Assembly (NCBI GenBank): GCA_965240325.2
Contig: OZ251232.1
Coordinates: forward strand, 1 to 64,000
DNA from: Rebecca billardiae RCC1528
Lineage: Eukaryota > Protista > Haptophyta
Length of the DNA: 64,000 bases
Reading direction: 5' to 3'
Shown here one piece after another: positions 1 through 50,969 of this stretch (the first letter of the stretch is position 1; each line of letters begins with the position of its first letter). The notes beneath the pieces were generated by a model, which saw only the letters and a program-made list of their open reading frames with translations, was not told where the DNA came from and ran no database searches. A program made the translations under genes and the position numbers.

Positions 1-349
1 CCCTAACCCTAAACCCTAACCCCCTAAACCCTAACCCTAACCCTAACCTAACCCTAACCCTAACCCTAACCCTAACCCTAACCCTAACCCTAACCCTAAC
101 CCTAACCCTAACCCCTAACCCTAACCCACCCTAACCCCTAACCCTAACCCTAACCCTAACCCTAACCCCTAACCCTAACCCTAACCCTAACCCTAACCCT
201 AAACCCCTAACCCTAACCCTAACCCTAACCCTAACCCTAACCCTAACCTAACCTAACCCTAACCCTAACCACCTAACCTAACCCTAACCCTAACCCTAAC
301 CCTAACCCTAACCTAACCCTAACCCTAACCCTAACCCTAACCCCTAACC

Positions 350-390
<41 letters not shown>

Positions 391-637
391 CCCTAACCCC
401 TAAACCCTAACCCCTAACCCTAACCCTAACCCTAACCCCTAACCCTAACCCTAACCCTAACCCTAACCCCTAACCCTAACCCTAACCCTAACCCTAACCC
501 TAACCCTAACCCCTAAACCCTAACCCTAACCCTAACCCTAACCCCCCCTAACCCTAACCCTAACCCTAACCCTAACCCTAACCCTAACCCTAACCCTAAC
601 CCTAACCCTAACCCTAACCCTAACCCTAACCCTAACC

Positions 638-678
<41 letters not shown>

Positions 679-824
679 CCCTAACCCTAACCCTAACCCT
701 AACCCTAACCCTAACCCTAACCCTAACCTAACCCTAACCCTAACCCTAACCCCTAACCCTAACCCTAACCCTAACCCTAACCCTAACCCTAACCCTAACC
801 CTAACCCTAACCCTAACCCTAACC

Positions 825-865
<41 letters not shown>

Positions 866-891
866 CCCTAACCCTAACCCTAACCCTAACC

Positions 892-923
<32 letters not shown>

Positions 924-929
924 CTAACC

Positions 930-970
<41 letters not shown>

Positions 971-1187
971 CCCTAACCTCCTAACCCTAACCCTAAACCC
1001 TAACCCTACCCCTAACCCTAACCCTAACCTAACCCCCTAACCCAAACCTAACCCTAACCCCTACCCTAACCCTAACCCTAACCCTAACCTAACCCCTAAC
1101 CCTAACCCTAACCCTAACCCCTAACCCCTAACCCTAACCCTAACCCTAACCCCTAACCCTAACCCTAACCCTAACCCTAACCCTAAC

Positions 1188-1218
<31 letters not shown>

Positions 1219-1536
1219 CCCTAACCCCCTAACCCTAACCCTAACCCTAACCCTAACCCTAACCCTAACCCCTAAACCCTAACCCTAACCCTAACCCTAA
1301 CCCTAACCCTAACCCTAACCCTAACCCTAACCCTAACCTAACCCTAACCCTAACCCTAACCCTAACCCTAACCCTAACCCTAACCCTAACCCTAACCCTA
1401 ACCCTAACCCTAACCCTAACCCTAACCCCTAACCCTAACCCTAACCCTAACCCTAACCCTAACCCTAACCCTAACCCTAACCCTAACCCTAACCCTAACC
1501 CTAACCCTAACCCTAACCCTAACCCTAACCCTAACC

Positions 1537-1577
<41 letters not shown>

Positions 1578-1712
1578 CCCTAACCCTAACCTAACCCTAA
1601 CCCTAACCCTAACCCTAACCCTAACCCTAACCCTAACCCTAAACCCTAAACCCTAACCCTAACCCTAACCCTAACCCTAACCCTAACCCTAACCCTAACC
1701 CTAACCCTAACC

Positions 1713-1753
<41 letters not shown>

Positions 1754-1836
1754 CCCTAACCCTAACCCTAACCCCTAACCCTAACCCTAACTAACCCTAA
1801 CCCTAACCCTAACCCTAACCCTAACCTAACCCTAAC

Positions 1837-1867
<31 letters not shown>

Positions 1868-2084
1868 CCCTAACCCTAACCCTAACCCTAACCCTAACCC
1901 TAACCCTAACCCTAACCCTAACCCTAACCCTAACCCTAACCCTAACCCTAACCCTAACCTAAACCTAACCCTAACCCTAACCCTAACCCTAACCCTAACC
2001 CTAACCCTAACCCTAACCCTAACCCAACCCCTCACCCTAACCCTAACCCTAACCCTAACCCTAACCCTAACCCTAACCCTAACC

Positions 2085-2115
<31 letters not shown>

Positions 2116-2224
2116 TAACCCTAACCCTAACCCTAACCTAACCCTAACCCTAACCCCTAACCCTAACCCTAACCCTAACCCTAACCCTAACCCTAACCCT
2201 AACCCTAACCCCTAACCCCTAACC

Positions 2225-2265
<41 letters not shown>

Positions 2266-3107
2266 CCCTAACCCTAACCCTAACCCTAACCCTAACCCTA
2301 ACCCTAACCCTAACCCTAACCCTAACCCTAACCCTAACCCTAACCTAACCCTAACCCTAACCCTAACCCTAACCCTAACCCTAACCCTAACCCTAACCCT
2401 AACCCTAACCCTAACCCTAACCCTAACCCTAACCCTAACCCTAACCCCTAACCCTAACCCTAACCCTAACCCTAACCCTAACCCTAACCCTAACCCTAAC
2501 CCTAACCCTAACCCTAACCCTAACCCTAACCCTAACCCTAACCCCTAACCCTAACCCTAACCCTAACCCTAACCTAACCCTAACCCCTAACCCTAACCCT
2601 AACCCTAACCCTAACCCTAACCCTAACCCTAACCCTAACCCTAACCCTAACCCTAACCCTAACCCTAACCCTAACCCTAACCCTAACCCTAACCCTAACC
2701 CTAACCCTAACCCTAACCCTAACCCTAACCCTAACCCTAACCCTAACCCTAACCCTAACCCTAACCCTAACCCTAACCCTAACCCTAACCCTAACCCTAA
2801 CCCTAACCCTAACCCCTAACCCTAACCCTAACCCTAACCCCTAACCCTAAACCCTAACCCCCCTAACCCTAACCCTAACCCTAACCCTAACCCTAACCCC
2901 TAACCCTAACCCTAACCCTAACCCTAACCCTAACCCCTAACCCTAACCCTAACCCTAACCCTAACCCTAACCTAACCCTAACCCTAACCCTAACCCTAAC
3001 CCTAACCCTAACCCTAACCCTAAACCTAACCCTAACCCTAACCCTTAACCCTAACCCTAACCCTAACCCTAACCCTAACCCTAACCCTAACCCTAACCCT
3101 AACCTAG
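1..3107. repeat. Terminal telomeric array (CCCTAA)n
   Basis: Continuous CCCTAA hexamers from base 1 with scattered 1-nt indels; C-rich strand at the 5' end, as expected for a left chromosome end. Confidence 0.99.
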
Positions 3108-4295
3108 CAGGTTAGGGTTAGGGCGCAGGTAAGGGTTAGGGCGCAGGTAAGGGTTAGGGCGCAGGTAAGGGTTAGGGAAATGGTAAGGGTTAGGGAAATG
3201 GTTAGGGTTAGGGTTAGGGAAATGGTTAGGGTCGCCGGTACTAAAATGAGAATTTCTCGAGATTGACCAAACCGATTTCAACGAGACTTGGGCTCTGCCA
3301 TGGAAATGGAAAGGGCTAGGGACCCTCCAATTTTGAGAGGATTCGGCTCGGGCAATCTCGAGAAAACATACTTCTAACCCCAACCCTAACCTAGAAATGT
3401 ACAATGTATCCAAATGTACAATGTATCCAAATGTACAATGCACATTTCCGAATGTACAATGTACATTCCGAATGTACAATGTACATTTCCGAATGTACAA
3501 TGTACTACACACCAAATGTAAAATTTACATTCCAAATGTACAATGTGAGGGTGAGGGTAAGGGTTAGGGCGCAGGTAAGGGTTAGGGCGCAGGTAAGGGT
3601 TAGGGCGCAGGTAAGGGTTAGGGAAATGGTAAGGGTTAGGGCGCACGTAAGGGTTAGGGCGCAGGTAAGGGTTAGGGAAATGGTAAGGGTTAGGGAAATG
3701 GTCAGGGTTAGGGAAATGGTAAGGGTTAGGGAAATGGTAAGGGTTAGGGAAATGGTTAGGGTTAGGGTTAGGGAAATGGTTAGGGTCGCCGGTACTAAAA
3801 TGAGAATTTCTCGAGATTGACCGAACCGATTTCAACGAGACTTGGGCTCTGCCATGGAAATGGAAAGGGCTAGGGACCCTCCAATTTTGAGAGGATTCGG
3901 CTCGGTCAATCTCGAGAAAACATACTTCTAACGGGTTAGGGCGCAGGTAGGGCGCAGGTAAGGGTTAGGGCGCTGGTAAGGGTTAGGGCGCAGGTAAGGG
4001 TTAGGGCGCAGGTAAGGGTTAGGGCGCAGGTACGGGTTAGGGCGCAGGTAAGGGTTAGGGCGCAGGTAAGGGTTAGGGCGCAGGTAAGGGTTAGGGCGCA
4101 GGTAAGGGTTAGGGCGCAGGTAAGGGTTAGGGTTAGGGTGGTGGTTAGGGTCGCCAGTACTAAAATGAGAATTTCTCGAGATTGACCGAACTGATTTCAA
4201 CGAGACTTGGGCTCTGCCATGGAAATGGGAAGGGCTAAGGGCCCTCCAATTTTGAGAGAATTTGGCTCGGTCAATCTCGAGAAAACATACTTCTA
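3108..4295. repeat. Subtelomeric array: inverted 18-bp telomere-variant repeats plus three 145-bp modules
   Basis: Units GGGTTAGGGCGCAGGTAA and GGGTTAGGGAAATGGTAA, G-rich on the + strand. Near-identical 145-bp modules (TCGCC...CATACTTCTA) at 3232-3376, 3786-3930 and 4151-4295. Confidence 0.95.
3394..3546. repeat. AT-rich short tandem repeat (AATGTACAATGTA-type)
   Basis: Repeated AATGTACAATG units containing TGTACA palindromes, lying after module 1 and before the next telomere-variant array. Confidence 0.85.
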
Positions 4296-7200
4296 GGGCG
4301 CGCGCGGCGCAGCCGGCGGCGGCTCGGCTGCGCGAGCGGTCCGACGCCGCACGCCTCGCCTGAACCACTCGAAGCACGTCGCACCGCGCACCGCACACAC
4401 ACACGCTCTCGGCGCGCGCGCTCGCATCCAGCGCGCCGGGACGGGCACCGCGCGGCCGCCCGCCCGTGGAGCGAGAGGCGGCGGCGCGACGGCCACTGCC
4501 GTGGGCAGCGGCCGCAGCGCGCGCGCGGCGTGCGACGGGCCAGCCGCACGCGCCGCCGCTCGTGCCGCCGCGCGGCACTCGCGCCAGACGCGCCGCGTGC
4601 GCTCAGAGGCCCAACCTCGGCGCGGTTGAGCGGGCCGGCCGCCATCCGCATTCCCAGTTCAGACTCTCAGACCTGCCGCCGATCTCGCGACGGGCGATGG
4701 CGGCGCCCACCCGCCTGCCGTCGCCTCGGGCGTCTGCGGCAGACCGACCGCGCGAGGGGCGCGCGGTCGGTGTCCTTCGTGGGCCGTCCGAGCGCGCCCG
4801 CCCACCGGCTCGCTCTGTCCGCGAAGCACAGCCACACATAGCCCCCAGGAACAGCACGCCCGCGCCCGCGCCCGCGCGCGCGCGCCACAGTCCGCGCGCA
4901 CCGCAACCGCAGGGCCGCTCCGACGGGCGCCACACGCGGCACACACCCCGGGGACACGCATAGGAACGTCACCGCGGCGGTTGCGTGAGGGTCGGCCCGA
5001 GCCGCGCTCGCGCGCCCTCGTAAGAGACTACGCGACGGCCGTCGGCTGAACCCCGTTTCTCTCCTAACGTGGCCCACTCGGCCGCCACAGGTCGCGCACT
5101 GTGCAGCAGGGGCTCGCCGGGCAGTGGGCATCGGCCACCGAGGCTGCGCAGGGCCAGGCAAGCGTGCACGCCCGCTGACGCATTGCAAGCTAGCCAACGA
5201 CGGATGCGAACCGGCGCTGATCAATAGTACGCGTACCCCTCCAACTTTCCGAGGACCGAGGGTGTACCACTAACTAATCAGCGCGGCGGTAGGTTACTTT
5301 TATGCCGCACCGATTCGCGAGGCCGAGGAGGAACGGCGAAACACACGCGGACGCCACGTCGTTGCAGGGCGGCCGCGCTCAGCACCGCGCCGAAGCAGGC
5401 CGACGCGCTGCTCGAACCTACGTGCCATGTGCACCACGCGGCGCCACGCGCTCGGCGGGCACGCCCGGCCGGCCGTGTGCGCACGCACCTCGAGCGTCCC
5501 GTCGCGCGGTGCGCAAGTAGCTTCTGCGCGGACGCGCGTGCGCGCGGACGGTGGCGCGCCGTCGGCGGCGGAGGGAGCTTGGCGCCGTGCGCGGCGCTCG
5601 TGCGCACAGGCGCCGGGAGGAGCTGCGCCCGCTCCGCGCTGCGCGCGGCGCTGCGCCTCCGCCGCACGCGCCCTCGGCGCGCTCCCCGCTGCCTGCCCGG
5701 CGCTCGCTCGCATGCGGCGCACCGCGCACTGGTCTGCACGCGGCGGCGGATCGTACGTTCAGTACACTGGTCGGGCCGGTCGAAGCGCGAGGTTCGATCG
5801 CAGGAGCGGGCGCTCGTGGCCCGCCGGAGCGAGCACAGCGGCGGCGCGCGGCCGCGGCCCGCAGCCCGTGGCTCCTGCTCGGCAGCTGGGCGCTGCAGCG
5901 GGCGCGCCCCACCCCGGCCTCGCGCGAGAGCAGCGGCGATGCGTTGGGGTGCGCGGCGGTGCGTTGCGCCGCGGAGTGGGCGCGTTGGCCACTCCGGGCC
6001 CGCACCGGGCGCACGCACCGGGCAAGCACTCGAACGCACTCGAGCCGGCGCGAGCTTCGACGCGCGGCCGCAGCCGGCACATCACAGGGGGCCAGCGCAC
6101 AAGTCCGGCGGCGCGGCGTGCGCGCGAGCAGCGCTGCATTCAGCAGTTGCCGCTCACCGGGGTCAGGTTGGACGAGGTGGAAGATGGGGGGCCGGGGCGG
6201 GGCCAGCTTCAGACGGTGCGAGGCGCTCGGACGGCAGTGGGGTGCCATGCGCGCGTCGCCCCCGGCGCGCGGCCGCGCCGCCGTCCGACGCCCAACGCAG
6301 CCTTGGAGAGCCGCCACTCCGCGCAGCGGCATGCGCGTCGCAGAGCGTGCGTGCAGTCGCGGGCAAGAGGACAGTCCAAGCGCGCAGCACGCACCCCGCG
6401 CGAAACCGCAGTGCGCAGGCTGCTGCTCGTCGGCGCGAGCCTCGCCTGCCAGGCCGCTGCGGCCCGAGCCGCGACGCCCGGCGGTCGCGAGCCGCCACGC
6501 GGCGCGCAGCTACGCCTGCGCCGAGGCAGTGAGCGCGCACGCGCGCGTAGCGGACGAGGAGCACGCATACGCGCGTGCGCGCGTTGCTGACCCGCCGGCA
6601 CCTCCCGCCGTTGTCTGCAAAGCGAGACCCACCCCGCGGCGAGCTCGGGCTGCCATAAGCAGCTGCCGCGATTTGACCCCTGTTGGAGCCTAAGTTTGGC
6701 GGCTTGGCGAGCGGCGGTGGGGGGCGGGGGCGCGCCACGAGCGGGTTGGAGGCGTCGCCGGGGTCGAGTAGCCTTGCCCACCACGACGATTCCCGGGTGG
6801 GAGGGGCGGACATTTTGGAGAAGTTCGAATCGGCGGTTTCCGTCCCGATGTCTATTTCACAAAGCTACTCGCGGTACCGTCGGAGTAATGTAAGTACGTA
6901 TTTCGCGCGGGTGCAAATCATTAGTGGCACTTGATGAAGTCGTTCCTTCAATTCCTCGAATCACCTCCGCCCGCACTATTCACCTACCCCTCGACCTTCG
7001 CGTTCCACAAGGAGCGCCCCGGCAAAGGGCGTCCCGGCGCGAGAGCCGCTGCCAAAGCCTCGGTAGTCGGTGGGCAGTGGGCTGGGTCTCGGCGGACGGG
7101 TGCGAGTCGAGTCGGGGCCGCGCGGGGGCCGAACGGGCGGGGGAGAGACGCGGCGTCCATGGCGTATTCGCGTGCGCGCATGGATTGCTCGAACCGCCCG

Positions 7201-39950: not shown

Positions 39951-40186
39951 CCCATCGTGGTCCGGAGCCACCGGGCCTGACAATGACGATGCATTGACCG
40001 CTCAGCAGTGCTCAGAAAGTCCTGCCGGGCGGCGACGATCGAATACGAAAAAGGCGCCGGCGCGGCTACCCACTCGGGGCTGCAGCAGCAGGGGTGCCTG
40101 CACCCCGCCCCCCCCCCCCGCTGCCGCGCCGCGCCGCGCGCGGCAACCCAAGGGTCGGGCGCGCGGGCCGCCGGCCGCGCGGCGCG

Positions 40187-43100
40187 ATGGCGGCGCTGGC
40201 CGCCGAGACTGGCGCGCCGCCGCCCGGCGCGCCGCTCGGCCGCGTCGCCGCGCAGCTGCGCGACGACGCGCAGCGCGAGGCGGTCGCGCTCACGACGCTC
40301 AGCAAGCGCGCGCGCGGCTCGTCGGACGAGGACGAGGCGCCGCCCGAGCCGACGTACGCGGACATCGACGTGGACCTGGACCTGTCCGACGCCACCGAGT
40401 CCGAGCACGGCGAGGCCGCCGCGCGCCGCACGCTCGCCGAGCAGCTGCGCGGGCTGCTCGAGCACTTTGACGAGTGGGCCGACTTCAACTCGGCGCGCGG
40501 GCACATCCGGCTGGTGACGGTGCTGATGTTCGCGCTGCTGCTCGGCGCGGGGGCGATGATGATCACCGTCGAGGTGCGCGAGCTCACCTTCTTCTCCGAG
40601 GCCGCCGCCGTCGTGCTCGCGTACGCCGCGGTCGGGTGGGCTGTCTCGTGCTGCGGGTGCGCGAGCGTGACGCTGCGGCTCACGCGGCTGCTGCTCGCGT
40701 TCGCGTCGTGCGCGACGCTGATGGCGGTGCTGTTCGGCACGCTCGCGATGATCACCACCGCCGTCGCCCTCGCCGCGATCGGCACCGCCGCGCGGTACGA
40801 GCTCGGCGCGGGCTACATCTCGGTGCTCTCGGTCGGGCTGGCGCTGCTGTCGTGCGCGCTGGTCGGGCTGTGGAGCCTGGCCGCGCACGACGCGCGCGTC
40901 ACGCGGCTCAACATGCTGCTGCGCGGCATCCCGGGGACGGGCGAGCTGCCGCGCGCGCCGAACCGCGCGCGCGCGTGGTGGCGCCGCAGGCGCCGCCGCC
41001 CCGCGCAGGAGGCCGCCGCCGCCGCGAAGGGCGCGGGCGCGGACGACGACGACGAGGACGAGGCGGAGGCGCTGGCCGACGCGCAGCAGAGGCAGCAGAG
41101 GCGCGCGCGCGCGGGCCGGCGCGCGCGCGCGCAGGCGCGCGAGGCGCGGCGCGGGAGCGAGGCGGCGGGGCTGCGGCCCGCGGACGGCGCCGACGCCGAC
41201 GATGCCGACGCGCGCGCGGACGACGAGGGCGACGGCGCCGCCATCGCGCGCCGCGCCGAGCGCTCGGCGGGCGGCGTGCCCGCGGCCGGCAGCGCGGGCG
41301 CGCGCCGCACGCGCGGCCGCGGCGGCAACGAGTCGCAGTCGTGGTCGGGCGGGTCGGTGCTGCGCCGCGTGCAGGGCACGGCGGCGAACGTGCTCACGCG
41401 GCTGGGCTCGACGCGCATGGCGCGCGCCGAGTCCAACGTCGCCACGCGCCGCGACTCGACGCGCGCTGAGCGCGAGCGCGACTCTCCGGCCGCGGCCGCG
41501 GCCGCGCGCGCCAACGGGTACGCAGACGCGCTCGACGACGAGGAGGCGCCCAAGTTCGTGCCGCGCGTGGAGGAGCTGGACGAGCAGGAGCAGCGCAGCC
41601 GCACGCGCGCCCGCTGGCTCCTGCTGCTCGTCGGCCTCCCCGCCTTCGGCTTCGGCCTCGCGCTCATCTACCCGCTGCTCTTCTCGGAGACGCAGCAGGT
41701 GGAGCGCGAGCTCGTGCTGATCGGGCACAGGAGCGAGATGGCCGACTTCTACGTGGCGTGGGAGGGGGCGATGGGCGCGCTGGTGCCGGACGAGGACCAC
41801 AGGCCGGTGGCGCGCGTGCTGGCGAGCGGCGAGCGCGCGCACGGCGCGCGCCGCTTCCGCGGCGTCCCCTTCCTCAAGTCTCTGCGGCTGCTGCGCGACG
41901 CTGGCGTGCTGAGCGCGCCCTTCTCCGCGCCAAAGCAGCTGGTGCTGATGGTCACAAGCAGGGCGCACGCGCCCGCGCCGCCGCCGCCGCCGTGGCCGCC
42001 CGCGCCGGACGCGGGCGCGGGGTGCGACGACACCGAGCCCACGCCGTGGTGCGAGGCGCGCCGAGAGCGCCGCTGCGGCCGGCCGCTCTTCGACGCGCGC
42101 TGCCTGCGCACGTGCGGCCGGTGCGAGCCCAGCCCGCCGCCCGCGCCGCCGCCGCCGCGCCCGCCGCCGCCGCTGCCGCCCACGCGGCCCGACGGCAGCC
42201 GCGCGCTCGGCGCGCCGGTGGCGCTGGCGGGCGACTCTGCGGAGGACTGCCTCAACGCGCTCTTTGGCGAGCGCGTCACCACCGTCTTCGGCCAGGTGCG
42301 CACGCGGCTCGCGCTGCTCGGGCTGGCCGCCGCCGACGTGGCGGGCACCGCCTCGCGGCGCACGCGCGGCGCGCAGCCGGCGGGCGGCACGCCGCGCTCC
42401 GTCGCGCTGTCCGACTTTGAGCTGGTGTGCTACGAGGGCGAGCTGCTCTCCGCGCGCTCCTTCTGGGCGGACGCGCGCGCGCAGCTCGGCGCGGCCGCGC
42501 TCGAGCAGCCGTGCGCCACGCAGGCGGGCGTGGTGGGCGGGATGGGCCCGTTCGCAGGCTCGCTCTACTTCCAGAGTCTCACCGAGGGGCTTCAGGCGCA
42601 CGCGCAAGGCCTGCGCAGCAACAACGAGAGCGCGCGCGCGGACGCGGCGGACGCGTCGTGCGTCGAGGTGTACTCCAACCCGCAGCTCGAGGTGAACCGC
42701 TCGCAGCTGCTCCGCTCGATCGGCTCGACGGAGCGCCACCTGCTCGAGATCGCCTCCTTCCTGGGCAGGCCGCCCTTCCGCTCGTACGCGGGGCCGTCCA
42801 ACACGTGGTACGAGCTCTCCTACCGCACGCTGGTGAGTCACGCCCGAGCGCACCCGCACACACCGCCGCACACACCGCCGCACACACAGCCGCACACACA
42901 GCCGCACACAGCCACGGAGCGTGCGCGCGCGGCACACGCGCACGCGAGCGCGCGCTCACTCGCCGCCCTGCCCCCCTCCGCTGCGCCGCGCCGCGCCGCG
43001 CCGCGCCGCCAGACGGCCGAGCAGTCGCGCGACAGTGCGGGCAACGTGCGGCTGATCAACATGATCGCGGCGGTGGTGGAGCGCGCGCTGCAGGTCTCGC

Positions 43101-43660
43101 CGCAGGGCGGCAGCTACGGCATCATCGCCACGGCCGCCACGCTGGCCAACATCGAGCAGCGCGAGCGCCTCGACCCCGCGCGCGCCAACATGTACCGCCT
43201 CAACTGGGAGGAGCGCAACGCCAAGCTGGCCGCCATCTCGAGGGGCGAGCACGCGTACGTCGAGCTGGTGCCGCCGCGCGGGCTGCGCAACGGGCAGTAC
43301 CTGGGGCGGCAGGAGGCGCGCGGCATCGAGTACGTCAAGGAGGGCGACATCGACAAAGCGAGGGAGGCGTTCGCGCAGGTGCGGACGCGAACGCGCCGCC
43401 GCCGCCGCCGGGGCGCGCGGCACGCGCTCACGTCCGTGCCCCCCCCCCCCCCCCCGCCGCAGGTGTACCTGGGGTTTGGGCTCGAGGGCATCAAGCACGT
43501 GATCGCTGCGTGCACCGAGGTCGCGGTCGCCTTCACGCGCTCCGAGGTGGCGGAGCAGTTCAACATCACGATGCACGACTCGTCCGCGCTGCTCGCAGAG
43601 GAGCAGCTCGAGCGCATCGCCGACGCCATCGACGACGTGGCGGAGGCGGACGAGGACTGA
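40187..43660 (+). CDS. Multi-pass membrane protein with ShK-like domain and C-terminal Asp/Glu racemase-like domain; introns 42833-43012 and 43379-43462
   Basis: About 5+1 TM helices; six-Cys module CDD..WC..RC..RCLRTCGRC; racemase motifs GVVGGMGP, GPSNT, RLINMI, GIIATAAT, IAACTEV and DSSALLAE. Confidence 0.8.
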   Translation: MAALAAETGAPPPGAPLGRVAAQLRDDAQREAVALTTLSKRARGSSDEDEAPPEPTYADIDVDLDLSDATESEHGEAAARRTLAEQLRGLLEHFDEWADFNSARGHIRLVTVLMFALLLGAGAMMITVEVRELTFFSEAAAVVLAYAAVGWAVSCCGCASVTLRLTRLLLAFASCATLMAVLFGTLAMITTAVALAAIGTAARYELGAGYISVLSVGLALLSCALVGLWSLAAHDARVTRLNMLLRGIPGTGELPRAPNRARAWWRRRRRRPAQEAAAAAKGAGADDDDEDEAEALADAQQRQQRRARAGRRARAQAREARRGSEAAGLRPADGADADDADARADDEGDGAAIARRAERSAGGVPAAGSAGARRTRGRGGNESQSWSGGSVLRRVQGTAANVLTRLGSTRMARAESNVATRRDSTRAERERDSPAAAAAARANGYADALDDEEAPKFVPRVEELDEQEQRSRTRARWLLLLVGLPAFGFGLALIYPLLFSETQQVERELVLIGHRSEMADFYVAWEGAMGALVPDEDHRPVARVLASGERAHGARRFRGVPFLKSLRLLRDAGVLSAPFSAPKQLVLMVTSRAHAPAPPPPPWPPAPDAGAGCDDTEPTPWCEARRERRCGRPLFDARCLRTCGRCEPSPPPAPPPPRPPPPLPPTRPDGSRALGAPVALAGDSAEDCLNALFGERVTTVFGQVRTRLALLGLAAADVAGTASRRTRGAQPAGGTPRSVALSDFELVCYEGELLSARSFWADARAQLGAAALEQPCATQAGVVGGMGPFAGSLYFQSLTEGLQAHAQGLRSNNESARADAADASCVEVYSNPQLEVNRSQLLRSIGSTERHLLEIASFLGRPPFRSYAGPSNTWYELSYRTLVSHARAHPHTPPHTPPHTQPHTQPHTATERARAAHAHASARSLAALPPSAAPRRAAPRRQTAEQSRDSAGNVRLINMIAAVVERALQVSPQGGSYGIIATAATLANIEQRERLDPARANMYRLNWEERNAKLAAISRGEHAYVELVPPRGLRNGQYLGRQEARGIEYVKEGDIDKAREAFAQVRTRTRRRRRRGARHALTSVPPPPPPPQVYLGFGLEGIKHVIAACTEVAVAFTRSEVAEQFNITMHDSSALLAEEQLERIADAIDDVAEADED

Positions 43661-44577: not shown

Positions 44578-44840
44578 CCAGCGGGGCGCGGAGTGCGCCG
44601 TTGATTGGGGCGCTCGATCAGCCTGCGCGCCGGTCGGCCACTCAGCCGAGCGTCAGCAGCATGTGCAGTGGCAGCCGTCTGGTACCGCCGGGTACATCCT
44701 CCGCCAGTCACTAAAAGCGCGGGCCCAGGGAACCGATGACGAAATTCCGCGCGATAAAAAAAAGGACACTTATTGCTGGAAAAGAGCGCGCGGCGGTGGT
44801 TTCCGTTGGCGGCGGGGGCGGGCTTCACCCTGCAGCGACG

Positions 44841-47800
44841 ATGGCGCCACCGGCGTGGCTGCACGCGGGCGCCCACGAGCCGCCGCCGCTGCCCGACGCG
44901 CCGGACGCGCGGCGCGAGGTGCTCGCGGAGCTGCGCCGGCGGCGGCGCGTCGCGCGCTTCGCGCTCGCGCGCCTCGGCGCGCGCGCCGACGCTGCGCACG
45001 GCGGCGCGCGCCGCGCGGTGCTGTGCGCGCTGCGCCGCGTGGCGCTCGACGCGGAGGCGCGGCTCGCGCGGCTGCTGGCGGGGGGCGGCGGCGTGGAGGT
45101 GGACGACGTGCTCATCGCGACGGCCGACGCCTCCGTCGCGCGCGCCTCGCGCCACCGCGCGCACGCCCTCCGCCGCGTCGCCGCGTCGCTGTGCGCCGAG
45201 CGCAGCCTGCCGCTGCTGGTGGACGCGGCCGCGCGCGACGCCGCCGCGGCCGCGCTGCTGCGCGCGGCGGACGAGCCGCGCGCGGCGGTGCGCGACGCGG
45301 CGGCCGCGGCCACCGCCATCGGCCGCGCCGTCGACGGCGGCGCGCCCTTCGCCGCCGCGCTCGGCGCGGAGCGCGCGGCGTGGGTGCGCGCGTGCGCGTG
45401 CGCGCTCGACTCACGCCCGTGGCTGCGCGCCGTGCGCGGCCGCGACCTGCCGCGGCCCGCCGAGTGGGGCGCGGACGACGCGGCGTGGGGCGCGGGCGCG
45501 GAGGCGGACGACGCGGGCCCTCCCCCCGCGTGGGCCTCCGCCGCGTACGCCGCGTGCTGCGCGGAGGTGCGCGCGCTGCGTGAGGCCGAGCCCTCCGCCG
45601 TCGAGGCGAGGCTGCGCGCCAACCTGCACGCTGAGCCGGGGGCAGCGGCGGAGGCGGCGGAGGCGGGGGAGGCGGAGCGGCTGCGCGCCGCGCGCGGCTG
45701 CGCGCTGCGCGCGCGCCGTGCCGTGCTGCGCCTCGTCCGCGCCGCCTCGGTGCTGCGCCACGCGCAGCGCGCGCTCGCGCTCGAGCGCTCCAGCGATGGC
45801 GGCGGCGGCGGTGGCAGCGAGGACGAGGCGGAGGGCGAGGCGGAGGCGGAGGCGGAGCTCGAGCGCGAGGGCGAGGCGGGCTGGGCCGCGTACGCCGCGC
45901 GCTGCCTCGGCACGTGCGCGCTGCTGCGCACGCCGCCCGCCCTCGCGTCCGCGCGCGCGGGCTCGGCCGCGCGCGCCGACGGCGGCTGGCTGGTGCAGCT
46001 GCCGCGCGCGCCGCGCGCGGCGGGCGCAGAGGCGGCGCTCGCGGCGCGCGCGGCGCACGCGCTCGCGCGCGCCGAGGACGAGGACGAGGCGGAGGGCGAG
46101 GCGGCGGGCGCGGCCCCGTGGCTGCACGGCCTGGCGCGCGCGCCGCCGTGCGTGCTCGACGGCTGCGGCCGGCGCGCGCTGCACGAGGCCGCCTGGGCGG
46201 ACGCGGCCGCGGCGTGCGCGCGCGCGTGCGCGGTCGGCGCGCGCGCGTGCTGCCGCGCGGCCGGCGAGGGCGCGGCCGACGGCGCGTCGGCGGCGCCGGC
46301 CGCGCTCGGCCTGTGCCCGCTGGTGCACACGTGCGCCGCCCTGTGCGCCGAGGCCGAGCTGGCCGAGGCCAAGGCGGCGCTGTGCGTGCCTCTGCTCGGG
46401 CTGAGCCGCGCGGCCGCGCACCCGCGCGGAGCGGCGGGCGCGCGCGCCGCGCTGCTGTGCGCGATGGGCGAGGGCGCGCGGGGCGGGGGCGCGGGGGCGG
46501 GGGCGGAGGCGGAGGCGCTCGGGCCGCGCGCGCTCGCGTCGCACGCGCTCGGCTGCGCGCGCGCCGCCGCCTCCTGCCGCGCGCGCGCCGCGCTGCTCGG
46601 GCGCGTGGCCGCCGCCGCTCTCTCAGACGAGGCGGCGGTGGCGCGCGCGCTGCTCGCACGCGCGGAGGCGGAGGGCGGCGCGGAGGCGGAGGGCGGCGGG
46701 CGCGCGTGCGCGGAGCTCGCGCCGCTGGCGTGCGTGCTGTGCGCCGCGCCGCCCGCGCTGCGGCTGAGCGCGGCCGTGCACGCCGCCCTCGACGTGCTGG
46801 GCGCTGCGCACGCCTCGGCGCAAGCACTGCGCGCGCCGCGCGCGCACGGCGGCGGCGGCGGCGGCGGCGGAGACGGCGGCGTGGGTGCGCCGCCGAGTGC
46901 GCTCAGCGTGGCCGAGGCCGCTCTCGCCGCGCTGAGTGCGGCGTGGGCGAGCGGCGAGCACGCGGCCGCGCCGGGCGTGCGCGTGCCTCCGCGCCCGCCC
47001 TCGCCGCTGCCGCGCCCCGCGCCAGCCGCCGCCGCCGCCGCCGCCGCCGCCGCCTCCGCCGCCTCGGCCGCCCCCTTCTGGGCCGAGGGGTGCTGGGCGT
47101 GGCCCCCCGCGCTGGACGCGGCCGTGCGCGCGGCGGCGGGCGCGGCGGGCGGCGGCGCGGCCGCCGACGGCGCGGCGGCGGCGGTGCGCGCGCTGGCCGT
47201 GCGCGCGGCGCGCGTGCTCGGCGCGGACGCGGCGGCGGACACGCGCAGCCTGCTAACTGCCGCGGCCACGCAGCGCGCGCTGCTCGCGCCCAGCGGGCCG
47301 CACGGCGGCGTGTCCGCGGCCGATGGCGGTGACGACGAGGAGGACGACGCGGTGGCGCTGCGCCCGCTCTCGCCGCCCAGCGCGCGGGGCGGCGCCGAGG
47401 GCCGCGCCGCCGCCGCCGAGAGCGCGGCGCCGCCCCGCCCGGGCCGCGCCTCGCTGCGCGCGCCCGCCACGCACGCCGCCGCCGCGCACGCCGCCGCGCA
47501 CGCCGCCGCCGCCGGCGCTACGACCGCCGGCGGCAGCGGGTGCGGGTGCGTGTGCGCCGCCCTGTCCGAGTACGCGGCTGCGCCGCGCGGGCTGCCCACG
47601 CTCGAGGAGGCGGGGCTGCGCGCGCCGCGCGCGCTGGCGGCGCTGCTGCTGCCGACGAGCGGCGCGGGCGGCGGCGGCGCGGCGGGCGAGTCTCGCGCGC
47701 GGCACGGCGCGCACGCCGAGTGCGCCCACGCGGCCGCGCTGCGCGCCGCGGTCGCGCACAACGCTCACGCGGCCGCGGCGGCGGGCGCGCGCGTGGCCGC

Positions 47801-48096
47801 GGCGGCGGGCGCGGCGCTGGTGGCGGTGGCGGAGGCGGAGGCGGAGGCGGAGGCGGAGGCGGAGGCGGAGGCGGAGGCGGGCGCGGCGGCGCGCGGCGCG
47901 GCGGCGTGGGCGCCCGGCGTGCTGCTCGGCGCGCGGCCCGCCGCGGCCGCGGCCGCGGCCGCCGCCGCCGCCGCGCGCCAGCCGGCCGGCTACGACGCGA
48001 GCGCCGCGCCGCACCGCGCGGCGCGCTGGCGCGCGCTGCGCGCCGCCGCGCGCGCCGACGGCCTCGCCGAGGCGGCGGCGGCGGCGGGCGCGGCGC

Positions 48097-48166
<70 letters not shown>

Positions 48167-50969
48167 GGCGGCCGCCGCGCCGCCGCCCGCCGGCCCGCCG
48201 CGCCCGCTCTCCGCCGAGGCCGCGCTGCTGCGCTCCGCCGAGCAGCTCGCGCTCGCGCGGCGCGCGCTGCACAGCCTGCGCTGCCGCGGCGCCGCGCTGC
48301 GCGCGCGCGCGGACACGTGCGCAGCGCTCGGCAGGCTGGGCGCAGCGCTGCCGCCCGGACTGGCGGAGGCGCTCGAGGCGCAGGACGCGCGCGAGGCGGC
48401 GGCGCAGGCTGCCCCGGCCGAGGCCGGCGCCGCGCCCTCCGAGCAGCAGCCGCCGCCCACGCCCACGCCGCTGCAGCGCGCGAGCGCGGCGCGCGCGCGC
48501 GCGTTTGCGCGCAGCCTCGTGCGGCGCGCGGACGCGCGCACGCACGCGCGCGCGCCGCTCGCGTGCCCGGGGTGGGCGGAGGTGCTGCCGGCGGACGGCG
48601 GCGCGGGCGCGCGGGAGGACGGCGCGCGCGCCGCGCTCGCGCGCGACCTCGCGCGCGCGTGCGCCGAGCTCGGCGGCTGGGCGGCCGCGGGCGGCGCGCT
48701 CGGCGGCGGCGGCGGCGGCGCGGCCGCGCCGCCCGCCGTCCGCGCGGCCGAGGGCACGCGCGCCGCGGCCGGCCGCGCGCTGCGCGCGCTCAGCGCGGAG
48801 CTCGAGACGCTGGCGGCGGCGGAGCCCGCGCCGGCGCGGCGCGCGGGCGGCGTGCCCGCCGCCGCCGCCGTCCGCCTCGCGCGCACCACCGCCGACGCGT
48901 CCGCGAGCGCGCTGCGCGCCGCGCTGCGCGGCGCGGCCGCGGACGCGCCGCCGCGCTCGGCCGCGCGCGCCGCGCTCGCGCGCGCCGCGCGCGCGCTCGA
49001 GCGCGGCGCGGCGGCGGCGGCGCAGGAGGCGCCGGAGCAGCCCGCCGAGGCGGAGGCGGACGAGGAGCGCCAGTGGCCCGCGCGCGCCGCCGCCGCCGCC
49101 GCCGCCGACGGCGGGCTCGCCGCCGCGGCCGAGGCGTGCGCGGCGCTGCGCGCGCTGCCGCCGTCCGCGCGCGCCGCGTGCGCCGCGCGGCTGCTGGCGG
49201 CGCAGCTGCGCGGCGCCGCGGCGGGCGCGGGGCTCGCGCCCGTGGCGCGCGCGGAGGCGGCGCTCGCGAGCGCGCGCGCGGACGACGACGCCGCCGTCGC
49301 CGCGCTGCGCGGCCCGCGCGCCGCATCCGCCGCCGCCGCGCGCGCCGCGCTCGGCGCCGCGCTCGGCGCCGGCCGCGCGCGCGGCGTGGGCGGCGCGCTC
49401 GCCGACGCGCGCGCGGCCGCGGCCGGCGTCGCGGCCGCGCTCGACGACGGCAGCGACGAGGCGCGCGCGGCGGCGGAGGGCGCGGGCGCGGCCGCGGCCG
49501 ACGCGGCGGACGCCGAGGCCGAGGCGGACGCCGACGCGGCGCGCGCCGCGCGCGCCGCCGCCGCGCTCGCGCTCGCGCGCGCGCGCGCCGCCGCCGCGCG
49601 CGCCGCGCACGCCGCGAGCGCGGCCGCGCCGCGGCCGCCCGGCGGCGGCGGCGCCGCCGCCGGCGGCGCGGACGCGGACGCGGACGCGGACGCGGAGGAG
49701 GGAGGCGGCGGCGGCGGGCGCGGCGCGCTGGGCGAGAGCGCGGCGGCCGCGCGGCTCGCCGAGGCCGACCTCGCGCGCCGCGCGCGCGCGCTCGCCGCCA
49801 CCGCCGCCGCGGCGCACACCGCGCACCGCGCGCGCGCCGCCGCCGCGCACGGCGGCGCGGCGTGCGCGCTCGGCGCCTCCACCGCCGCGGCCGCCGCGGC
49901 GCGCGCGGGCTATGCGGCGGCGGCGCGCGCGTCGAGCGCGAGCGCGCTGGGCGCGGTGCGCGCGGACGTGATCGAGGGGATGGCCGCCGCCGCCGCCGCG
50001 GGGGCCGAGGCTAGCGTGGGCGGCCTCAGCGCGCTGCTCGGCGGCACCGCCGCCGCCACCGCCGCCGCCGCCGCCGCCGCCTCGCTGCCGCATGCGCCGG
50101 GCGACAACGCACTCTCGCGCGCGGCGGCCGCCGAGGCGGCGGCGAGCGCGGCGCGGCGCGCGCAGCTGCGCGCGCGGCTGGCGTGGCGCGCGCTCGTGCG
50201 CGCGCGGCTGCGCGGCCTGCGCGCGCGCGCGCGCGAGCAGGCCGCCGCGCGCCGCGCGCGCGCCGCGGCCGCGCGCGACGACGCCGCGGCCGCGCGCGCG
50301 CGCGCCGCCGCGGACGCGGCCGCCGCGCGCGCGGCCGCGCGCGAGCTGCGCGAGCTGCGCGCGCGCGAGGCGGCGGCGCGCGCGGCGCTGGCCGGGCTCG
50401 CGGCGGCGAAGGCGGAGCAGCTGCGCGGCCTCGTGCACGCGCGCTCGCACGGCCGCGTGCTCGGCGCCGACGCCGAGCCGCCCGCGCCCTCGGCCGGAGC
50501 CGCGGCCGCGCCGCGCCGCGCCGCCGCGGCCGCGCCGCGCCGCCCGCCGTCGCGCGCCGCGGCCGCGGCCGCGGAGGAGGCGGGCGCGGGCGCGGGCGGC
50601 GCGCGCGGCGCGGAGGTGGAATGGGCCGCCAGCGCCGAGCACGCGCCCGACTCGCCGCCCGACGCCGACGCCGCCGACGCCGCCGGCTCGCCCGCGCCGC
50701 CCTCGGCCGCGTCCGCGCGCGCGCAGCTCGCCGAGGCGCGCGCCGCGCTGCGCTCGGTGCGCGCGCGCAAGGAGGCGCTGCTGCTCGCGGAGGGGAGCGC
50801 GAGCGAGGGGCTCGGCGGCGGGTGGAGTGGCTCGGCGCGCCCGTCCTCCGCCTCCGCCACCTTCGGCCCCGCCTCGCCGCCCTCGCCCTTCTTCTCGGCG
50901 TCGCTCTCGGCGGGCGGCGGCAGCAGCAGCGTCGGCACGCGCCGCGCGCCCGAGCGCGCGCGCGGCTGA
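44841..50969 (+). CDS. Very large, apparently intronless Ala-rich hypothetical protein (~2040 aa) with a C-terminal coiled coil
   Basis: 6.1-kb frame with GCN/GAG/CTG codon bias; ATG at 44841; no domain recognised. Confidence 0.7.

Follow-up and report, generated by a model that had tools for sequence, protein, structure and literature searches.

A haptophyte gene for a multi-pass membrane protein with a C-terminal Asp/Glu-racemase-type domain and Ser in place of the first catalytic Cys

The window analysed here is a stretch of 64,000 nucleotides from Rebecca billardiae RCC1528 (GenBank assembly GCA_965240325.2, contig OZ251232.1, positions 1 to 64,000 of the forward strand), and the gene in question occupies 40187..43660 on its plus strand, as do all features given below, reading in one frame from an ATG at 40187 to a stop codon at 43658–43660. 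A first-pass annotation made from the sequence alone had described this locus as a single gene for a membrane-anchored Asp/Glu racemase-like enzyme that is fused to an ShK domain and has Ser for its first catalytic Cys. The features it listed, namely a transmembrane bundle and one further membrane helix (both visible in the hydropathy profile), the racemase motifs and the Cys module, all lie where they had been placed. The window is very GC-rich (70–90%), and in DNA of 75–80% GC long chance open reading frames (ORFs) are common on both strands, one of 998 amino acids on the minus strand being an example; since stop-free ORFs arise by chance at high GC, the length of an ORF alone is no proof of a gene. 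What sets 40187–43660 apart from the chance ORFs is the sustained third-position GC content in a single frame: in the frame of ATG 40187 it stays at 0.92–1.00 from about 40175 to 43660 and is broken by only one dip, to 0.82–0.86 at 42800–43024, and by the same measure no intergenic-looking stretch was found between 40187 and 43660.

The coding region also forms collinear tblastn blocks with relatives, both with P0011 and with P0015, the product of a Pavlova sp. CCMP459 transcript from the Marine Microbial Eukaryote Transcriptome Sequencing Project (MMETSP). The latter can be aligned to the window as four collinear blocks that share one frame, and in its single ORF of 846 amino acids an acidic N-terminus, a four-helix bundle, a variable loop and a fifth helix are followed by the two conserved regions and a racemase-type domain that is complete. 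Membrane part and racemase domain are thus joined in one spliced product, and two separate genes, the outcome that would have contradicted the first-pass annotation, are not what is seen for the Pavlova orthologue at transcript level. The same order of parts as in the window was found on three other contigs, among them L001 (encoding P0001) and L010 (encoding P0011), and for the last exon of the racemase domain (43463..43660) the identical sequence was called on an independent Logan contig, as P0005. We concluded that 40187–43660 is one real intron-containing haptophyte gene, which encodes a multi-pass membrane protein.

The 1,157-amino-acid translation of the whole region is, however, not the real product, because the racemase domain is interrupted by two in-frame introns, a correction to the first-pass annotation; once these are spliced out, the protein should have about 1,069 residues. 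Residue numbers in this text refer to the unspliced read-through from ATG 40187 and not to the mature protein. Exon A of the racemase domain (42521..42832) encodes GGMGP, Cys825 (in SCVE), SNPQL and GPSNT with Ser871. It is followed by intron 1 (42833..43012), which is 180 nt long, runs from GTGAGT to AG, is in frame and free of stops, coincides with the dip in third-position GC and carries two microsatellites, (CCGCACACACAG)4.8 and (CGCCG)6. Exon B (43013..43378) encodes INMI, ATAATL, a family-specific insertion with the NMYRLxWE motif and the conserved Lys of YVKEG. Intron 2 (43379..43462), of 84 nt, has the form GT, C-run, CAG, and is likewise in frame and stop-free, and exon C (43463..43660) contributes ACTEV with the catalytic Cys1109, a C-terminal helix and the stop codon. 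Since the lengths of both introns are divisible by three and neither has a stop codon, the unspliced gene reads as one ORF.

The spliced Pavlova product follows the window up to 42832 and picks up again at 43016, and a GT stands at the codon boundary of the intron 1 donor in all four other loci compared (L001, L002, L003 and L010). In L001 each of the three exons has a frame of its own, which makes reading through impossible there. At intron 2, the Pavlova mRNA contig L003 passes from GQ straight to VLEAF, and a GT is present at this position in L001, L002 and L010 as well. By these comparisons both introns are conserved among the haptophyte relatives, in line with the earlier suggestion that the racemase domain has been intronised. 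As to the Pavlova data themselves, L003 (JGI 3300016802, a Pavlova-type mRNA contig) retains intron 1, with a stop, at 2139–2345 and lacks intron 2, and P0015, the other transcript, from MMETSP, is spliced throughout. These data thus include a case of intron 1 retention. ORF-based callers have left read-through fragments of the family in public collections (P0001, P0004, P0006 and P0008). In genomes as GC-rich as this one, naive ORF calling therefore creates an annotation hazard, as it yields a plausible but wrong protein in which Pfam overlooks the domain.

The evidence that this domain belongs to the racemases includes profile comparisons. Among named families, the NCBIfam model racemase_CuyB matched the window with an E-value of 3.4e-11 (43.6 bits) in three collinear stretches, one per exon, which correspond to profile positions 2–26 (exon A), 92–158 (exon B) and 184–222 (exon C). 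A family profile built from the window sequence and its relatives (A2) matched the aspartate racemase 1jfl_A in the PDB with an E-value of 1.1e-11, followed by 2dx7 (5.8e-11), 5b19 (5.4e-07), 3s7z (1.9e-05) and then 2zsk. A phmmer search of the PDB with the read-through domain gave low-complexity noise only. Pfam PF01177, whose gathering score is 31 bits, is passed by a relative from the euglenid Ploeotia vitrea (P0010; 39.5 bits, profile positions 1–210), and the Pavlova orthologue reaches 28.9 bits. MAFFT alignments made from separate exon fragments misplaced pieces, and A2, A5 and A8 were used instead; in one of the discarded alignments (A4), exon B fragments containing GIIATAATL were placed on the N-terminal half, over GVVGGMGP. 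This misplacement probably reflects the duplication within the racemase fold and should caution against aligning the family from fragments.

Structure prediction gave a compatible picture. With alignment A8, which consists of the family sequences and five bacterial aspartate racemases obtained from a pattern scan with N-terminal alignment, AlphaFold produced a model with a predicted local distance difference test score (pLDDT) of 70.4 and a predicted template modelling score (pTM) of 0.68, the low-confidence parts being the two intron-coded inserts; the prediction from the single sequence had a pLDDT of 43. The predicted model fits a pair of pseudo-symmetric alpha/beta domains between which the active site lies. 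All of the top 15 Foldseek matches were aspartate or aspartate/glutamate racemases. In VIA-align, the predicted model aligned best with 3s7z_B (Z 20.6, root-mean-square deviation 2.8 Å, 223/235 residues) and 2DX7 (Z 20.2), while glutamate racemases gave Z 13–15, and hydantoin racemase and arylmalonate decarboxylase about 10. ESM Atlas look-alikes, taken as leads only, were Asp_Glu_race clusters at 0.85–0.86. The sequence evidence for the racemase fold stands on its own, without the model, and the two lines agree in assigning an Asp/Glu-racemase fold to the C-terminal domain, as the first-pass annotation had proposed.

The catalytic positions could be located precisely in this framework. GVVGGMGP is encoded at 42527–42550, GPSNT at 42791–42805 and ACTE at 43508–43519. 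In the alignment of the A2 profile with 1JFL, GPSNT lies over MPCNTAH, which contains Cys82, and ACTEV over GCTEV, which contains Cys194, and the same correspondence of residues is seen with the five bacterial enzymes in A8. The first of the two catalytic Cys of the superfamily is thus exactly replaced, as claimed earlier, by Ser871 (TCC, 42797–42799), and the second is intact as Cys1109 (TGC, 43511–43513). Ser occupies the first position in all five haptophyte loci, where it is encoded by TCC (window and Pavlova), TCG (L001) or AGC (L002 and L010); its maintenance across TCN and AGC codons indicates that it is kept by selection on the amino acid and not by inheritance of a single codon. In the Ploeotia relative this position is Cys (SPCNTF), which fits a two-Cys state ancestral to the membrane-anchored haptophyte clade. 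Further motifs of the substrate-binding scaffold are retained (GGMGP, SNPQ, NT, ATxxT, the Lys of VKxG, and CTE), and the family has not kept the Arg found in the bacterial PDRT motif. Two insertions, NMYRLxWE and HxYVELxP, are common to the haptophyte and Ploeotia sequences and do not occur in bacteria. The bacterial origin considered possible in the first-pass annotation has to be weighed together with this sharing of insertions with a euglenid.

The part of the protein that precedes the racemase domain begins with an acidic N-terminal region (40187..40504), which has no signal peptide, is taken as cytosolic and ends in a conserved SARGH motif (translation and alignment A9). The four-helix membrane bundle (40505..40885, residues 107–233), recognized by hydropathy, is kept in P0001, P0007/P0015 and P0011; it has its own conserved motifs, GCxxVxxRxxRxL and WxxxAxDARxTR, and it matched no family in Pfam or NCBIfam. 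An Arg/Ala/Asp-rich low-complexity loop (40886..41614, residues 234–476), also taken as cytosolic, opens with RRRRRR, and neither its length nor its sequence is kept among the relatives. The fifth membrane helix (41615..41677, residues 477–497; hydropathy 2.08) is preceded by RSRTRAR and has aligned counterparts in P0001 and P0007. The hydropathy peaks lie at residues 107–128, 135–157, 165–198, 211–233 and 477–497.

Because Arg runs flank the loop, RRRRRR after the fourth helix and RSRTRAR before the fifth, the positive-inside rule places the loop in the cytosol and everything after residue 497 on the extracytosolic side. We infer that the N-terminus, the bundle and the charged loop lie on the side of the cytosol and that the fifth helix carries the chain across the membrane, so that the C-terminal part would point outward. 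This part contains 11 Cys, six of the ShK-like module, four that are conserved (688, 748, 776 and 825) and Cys1109, a number that would allow five disulfides and leave one odd thiol, the catalytic Cys1109. It also contains three N-x-S/T sequons, at N813, N837 and N1126; the loop with N813 carries a sequon in four of the five prymnesiophyte-type sequences (the window and three other species). The extracytosolic location suggested by the first-pass annotation is therefore consistent with the positive-inside charges, the disulfide-rich module, the four conserved Cys and the sequons.

Between the fifth helix and the racemase domain lie two conserved, presumably extracytosolic regions separated by the Cys module. 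Region 1 (41678..41971) carries AWEGAMG, FRGVPM and QLV motifs in alignment A9, and its ESM Atlas look-alikes provided only weak von Willebrand factor A (VWA)-like structural leads, with TM about 0.4; region 2 (42200..42520) contains the invariant Cys688, Cys748 and Cys776 in the same alignment. Like the bundle, these two regions matched no known family in Pfam and NCBIfam. The six-Cys module (42023..42124) is situated between proline-rich linkers and follows the pattern C613-x8-C622-x7-C630-x8-C639-x3-C643-x2-C646, that is, the six-Cys spacing of ShK domains with the terminal CxxxCxxC, here CLRTCGRC. Its two top sequence matches in the PDB, 6buc and 7l2g, are ShK-type peptides with all six Cys aligned (E 0.12 and 0.52). 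Pfam ShK (PF01549) covered profile positions 2–37 of 37 at 11.7 bits (E 0.41), below its cut-off of 20.9 bits. A homologous module with the same Cys pattern occupies the equivalent place in P0003/P0011, and it is missing in Pavlova and in L001, so that it is present in only two known lineages of the family. The ShK domain of the first-pass annotation thus stood as regards the Cys number and spacing and the terminal CxxTCGxC shared with ShK/ShKT domains, and did not stand as a Pfam-level match or as a feature of the whole family: the module is a lineage-restricted insertion between two conserved regions and does not define the family. Cys688, Cys748, Cys776 and Cys825 (codons at 42248, 42428, 42512 and 42659), on the other hand, are invariant in the haptophyte family and are candidates for structural disulfides; the Ploeotia relative also has Cys776, before the first strand, and Cys825 (SCVE), in the second strand.

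Relatives of the domain are rare. When 1.84 billion representative proteins were searched exhaustively by HMMER with the product of 42200–43657 as query, 10 proteins were returned, which represent about five distinct species-level sequences and are mostly prokaryote-style ORF calls on eukaryotic contigs. P0015 was added by cluster look-up and is the only named close relative; where the sources name the relatives at all, they are called "hypothetical protein". Word-index protein searches with the domain, with the full-length protein (exon B as the region) and with the Ploeotia domain gave no match, the blank result of the domain query being probably due to swamping by low-complexity words, and a scan of metagenome contigs with exon B found no relative. 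The Ploeotia protein (P0010; EukProt EP01006; 713 amino acids) is built differently: its two-Cys racemase domain is joined to a class 3 lipase domain (PF01764, E 7.6e-18), and there is also a tail rich in Cys. No paper on a membrane-anchored or ShK-linked member of the racemase superfamily was found in the literature, nor any account of a racemase-fold domain to which an ShK module is attached. The new elements are the membrane-anchored architecture and the Ser/Cys catalytic variant; the enzyme fold itself is well known, and this is not a new kind of system.

Some features of the surrounding sequence may be mentioned. The window starts with a (CCCTAA)n telomere, and at about 3500–4300 an 18-nt unit derived from the telomere (GGGTTAGGGCGCAGGTAA, with an AAATGG variant) is arrayed in the opposite orientation and alternates with a less GC-rich repeat some 150 bp long, so that positions 1–4300 look like a structured subtelomere. 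Directly downstream of the gene, at 44736–50969, an alanine-rich ORF of 2,077 amino acids lies in DNA of 80–90% GC; it may be a gene or a compositional artefact.

Racemases of the Asp/Glu superfamily that work without pyridoxal 5′-phosphate are known as small soluble prokaryotic enzymes. The aspartate racemases among them (Pyrococcus horikoshii 1JFL/2DX7, Picrophilus 5B19, Salmonella 3S7Z; TIGR00035) share with the window protein GGMGP, SNPQ, xNT, ATxxT, the VK lysine and CTE, and the two-domain pseudo-symmetric fold of its predicted model, with Z 18–21. Unlike them, the window protein has Ser for the first Cys, no PDRT Arg and two family-specific insertions, and its domain is encoded by a eukaryotic gene with introns and sits behind five membrane helices and extracytosolic regions. 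The top named model for the window (E 3.4e-11), Pavlova (3.3e-16) and Ploeotia (5.9e-24) sequences is CuyB (NF052483). CuyB of Bilophila wadsworthia is a cysteate racemase, a PF01177 member that acts on an acidic amino acid (PMC11193023). It is a soluble bacterial two-Cys enzyme encoded beside cuyA, whereas the window protein is a membrane-anchored one-Cys protein, and, with scores of 43.6–85 bits against a cut-off of 190, the family was rejected as a CuyB equivalog.

Natural enzymes with one catalytic Cys are active, as the examples of Escherichia coli YgeA/EcL-DER (Thr83/Cys197) and RacX (Ala79/Cys193) demonstrate (PMC12838360, PMC12661438). EcL-DER/YgeA was reported to act on L- but not on D-Asp and D-Glu, and RacX is bidirectional (PMC12838360, PMC12661438); YgeA also racemises both enantiomers of homoserine, slowly, and the kcat/Km values of both YgeA and RacX are very low. 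The earlier statement that one-Cys variants can be direction-biased is thus one reading of these precedents, to which the behaviour of YgeA with homoserine does not conform. YgeA and RacX resemble the window protein as one-Cys members of the same fold with a hydroxyl-bearing or small residue at the first position followed by NT, and YgeA (5ELL) is a structural match to the predicted model (Z 16.7). They differ from it in having Thr or Ala instead of Ser and in being soluble, cytosolic and bacterial, and there is no specific sequence affinity: PRK10200 (YgeA) was matched in relatives only, at 14–15 bits against a cut-off of 417, by which a YgeA equivalog was rejected.

To our knowledge, the only studied algal branch of the superfamily is Alma1, the lyase of dimethylsulfoniopropionate (DMSP). 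Alma1 and the DMSP-lyase homologues of haptophytes, dinoflagellates and corals belong to the same superfamily, occur in haptophytes and include eukaryotic multi-domain variants. DMSP-lyase homologues are recognized by both Cys, in DCGF/NCGF and in ECTE/ECTQ (Shemi et al., 2023, PMC10349084). The window family, in contrast, is of the PCNT (aspartate racemase) type and has GPSNT and ACTE in place of these motifs, and its motifs were not found in the supplementary data of that study. An Alma1/DMSP-lyase identity was rejected on the published motifs, which are the basis on which the two groups are set apart here.

Considering these comparisons, the reading that we favour, and to which we give an even chance of being correct, is that the protein would act outside the cytosol on an acidic amino acid or a close analogue, as a racemase or epimerase with a single thiol. 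In this mechanism, modelled on the one-Cys precedents, Cys1109 would serve as the single thiol base that removes or delivers the alpha-proton of a substrate of the Asp, Glu or cysteate type, while Ser871, or a water molecule bound to it, would supply the proton on the other face. Turnover would be slow or enantiomer-biased, as in YgeA/EcL-DER and RacX. In an oxidising compartment, the change from Cys to Ser may guard against a Cys–Cys disulfide that would bridge and inactivate the active site. Several points weigh against this reading or against the steps leading to it. Neither the window protein nor its exons matched PF01177 even at an E-value of 10, and the named family models remained far under their cut-offs, CuyB as given above and asp_race (TIGR00035) with 12–13 bits against 93.1. 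Since bacterial racemases went into its alignment, the structural model cannot count as evidence separate from the sequence homology. As no public RNA run of this alga was listed, the splice junctions of the window gene itself were placed by comparison with relatives. The helix count within residues 165–198 is ambiguous, and two helices there, making five in the bundle, would flip the topology; the distribution of charges and the disulfide module speak against the flipped arrangement. The loss of the PDRT Arg means that the substrate may not be aspartate, and, judging from the low kcat/Km of YgeA and RacX, the Ser/Cys site might racemise hardly at all.

An alternative is a pseudoenzyme, an extracytosolic module that would bind an amino acid or organic acid and signal to the bundle and loop, as a receptor or transport regulator without turnover. 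One catalytic residue is gone in every haptophyte member, one-Cys relatives are very poor catalysts, and the conserved motifs of the bundle go beyond the needs of an anchor; yet the second catalytic Cys and CTE are invariant, Cys1109 is the sole unpaired Cys expected in the outer part, and Ser has been conserved through switches of codon family instead of drifting, and a pure binder would need neither residue; we regard a pseudoenzyme as unlikely. The single thiol could also perform a different chemistry, either beta-elimination, as in Alma1, the lyase of DMSP and dimethylsulfoxonium propionate (DMSOP), or decarboxylation with protonation, as in arylmalonate decarboxylase. Elimination and decarboxylation require one acid/base only, Alma1 is in the same superfamily, and the one-Cys arylmalonate decarboxylase 2vlb matches the predicted model at Z 10.4. 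Against this, the aspartate racemases match at Z 16–21, well above the decarboxylase, the amino-acid-type motifs NT, ATxxT and the VK lysine are kept, and GPSNT and ACTE, and not the DMSP-lyase motifs, are present, with the family motifs absent from the supplementary data of PMC10349084; such a chemistry appears improbable to us. It is hardly credible, finally, that two adjacent genes or non-coding DNA were read as one ORF at 75–80% GC. The long chance ORFs on both strands and a frame that stays open through two introns gave reason to consider this, but it is already largely refuted by the third-position GC near 1.0 in one frame without an intergenic gap, by the spliced Pavlova product with the whole architecture in one ORF and by the order of parts repeated on three contigs.

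A more far-reaching version of the favoured racemase/epimerase reading, which we consider doubtful, is that haptophytes possess a surface-exposed or luminal racemase that makes or salvages enantiomers of the D-Asp, D-Glu or D-cysteate type, and that the exchange of Cys for Ser is an adaptation to the oxidising compartment. If this were true, the protein would be the first membrane-anchored member in the superfamily of Asp/Glu racemases and an enzyme by which a eukaryote supplies or removes D-amino acids or D-sulfonates in the sea. The family represents a second, separate algal branch of the superfamily, which is of the aspartate-racemase type, is mounted on a conserved membrane module, probably faces outward and has a conserved Ser/Cys pair. 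It would be relevant to the way in which algae deal with acidic amino acids and sulfonates, as well as to the adaptation of a two-thiol mechanism to oxidising conditions.

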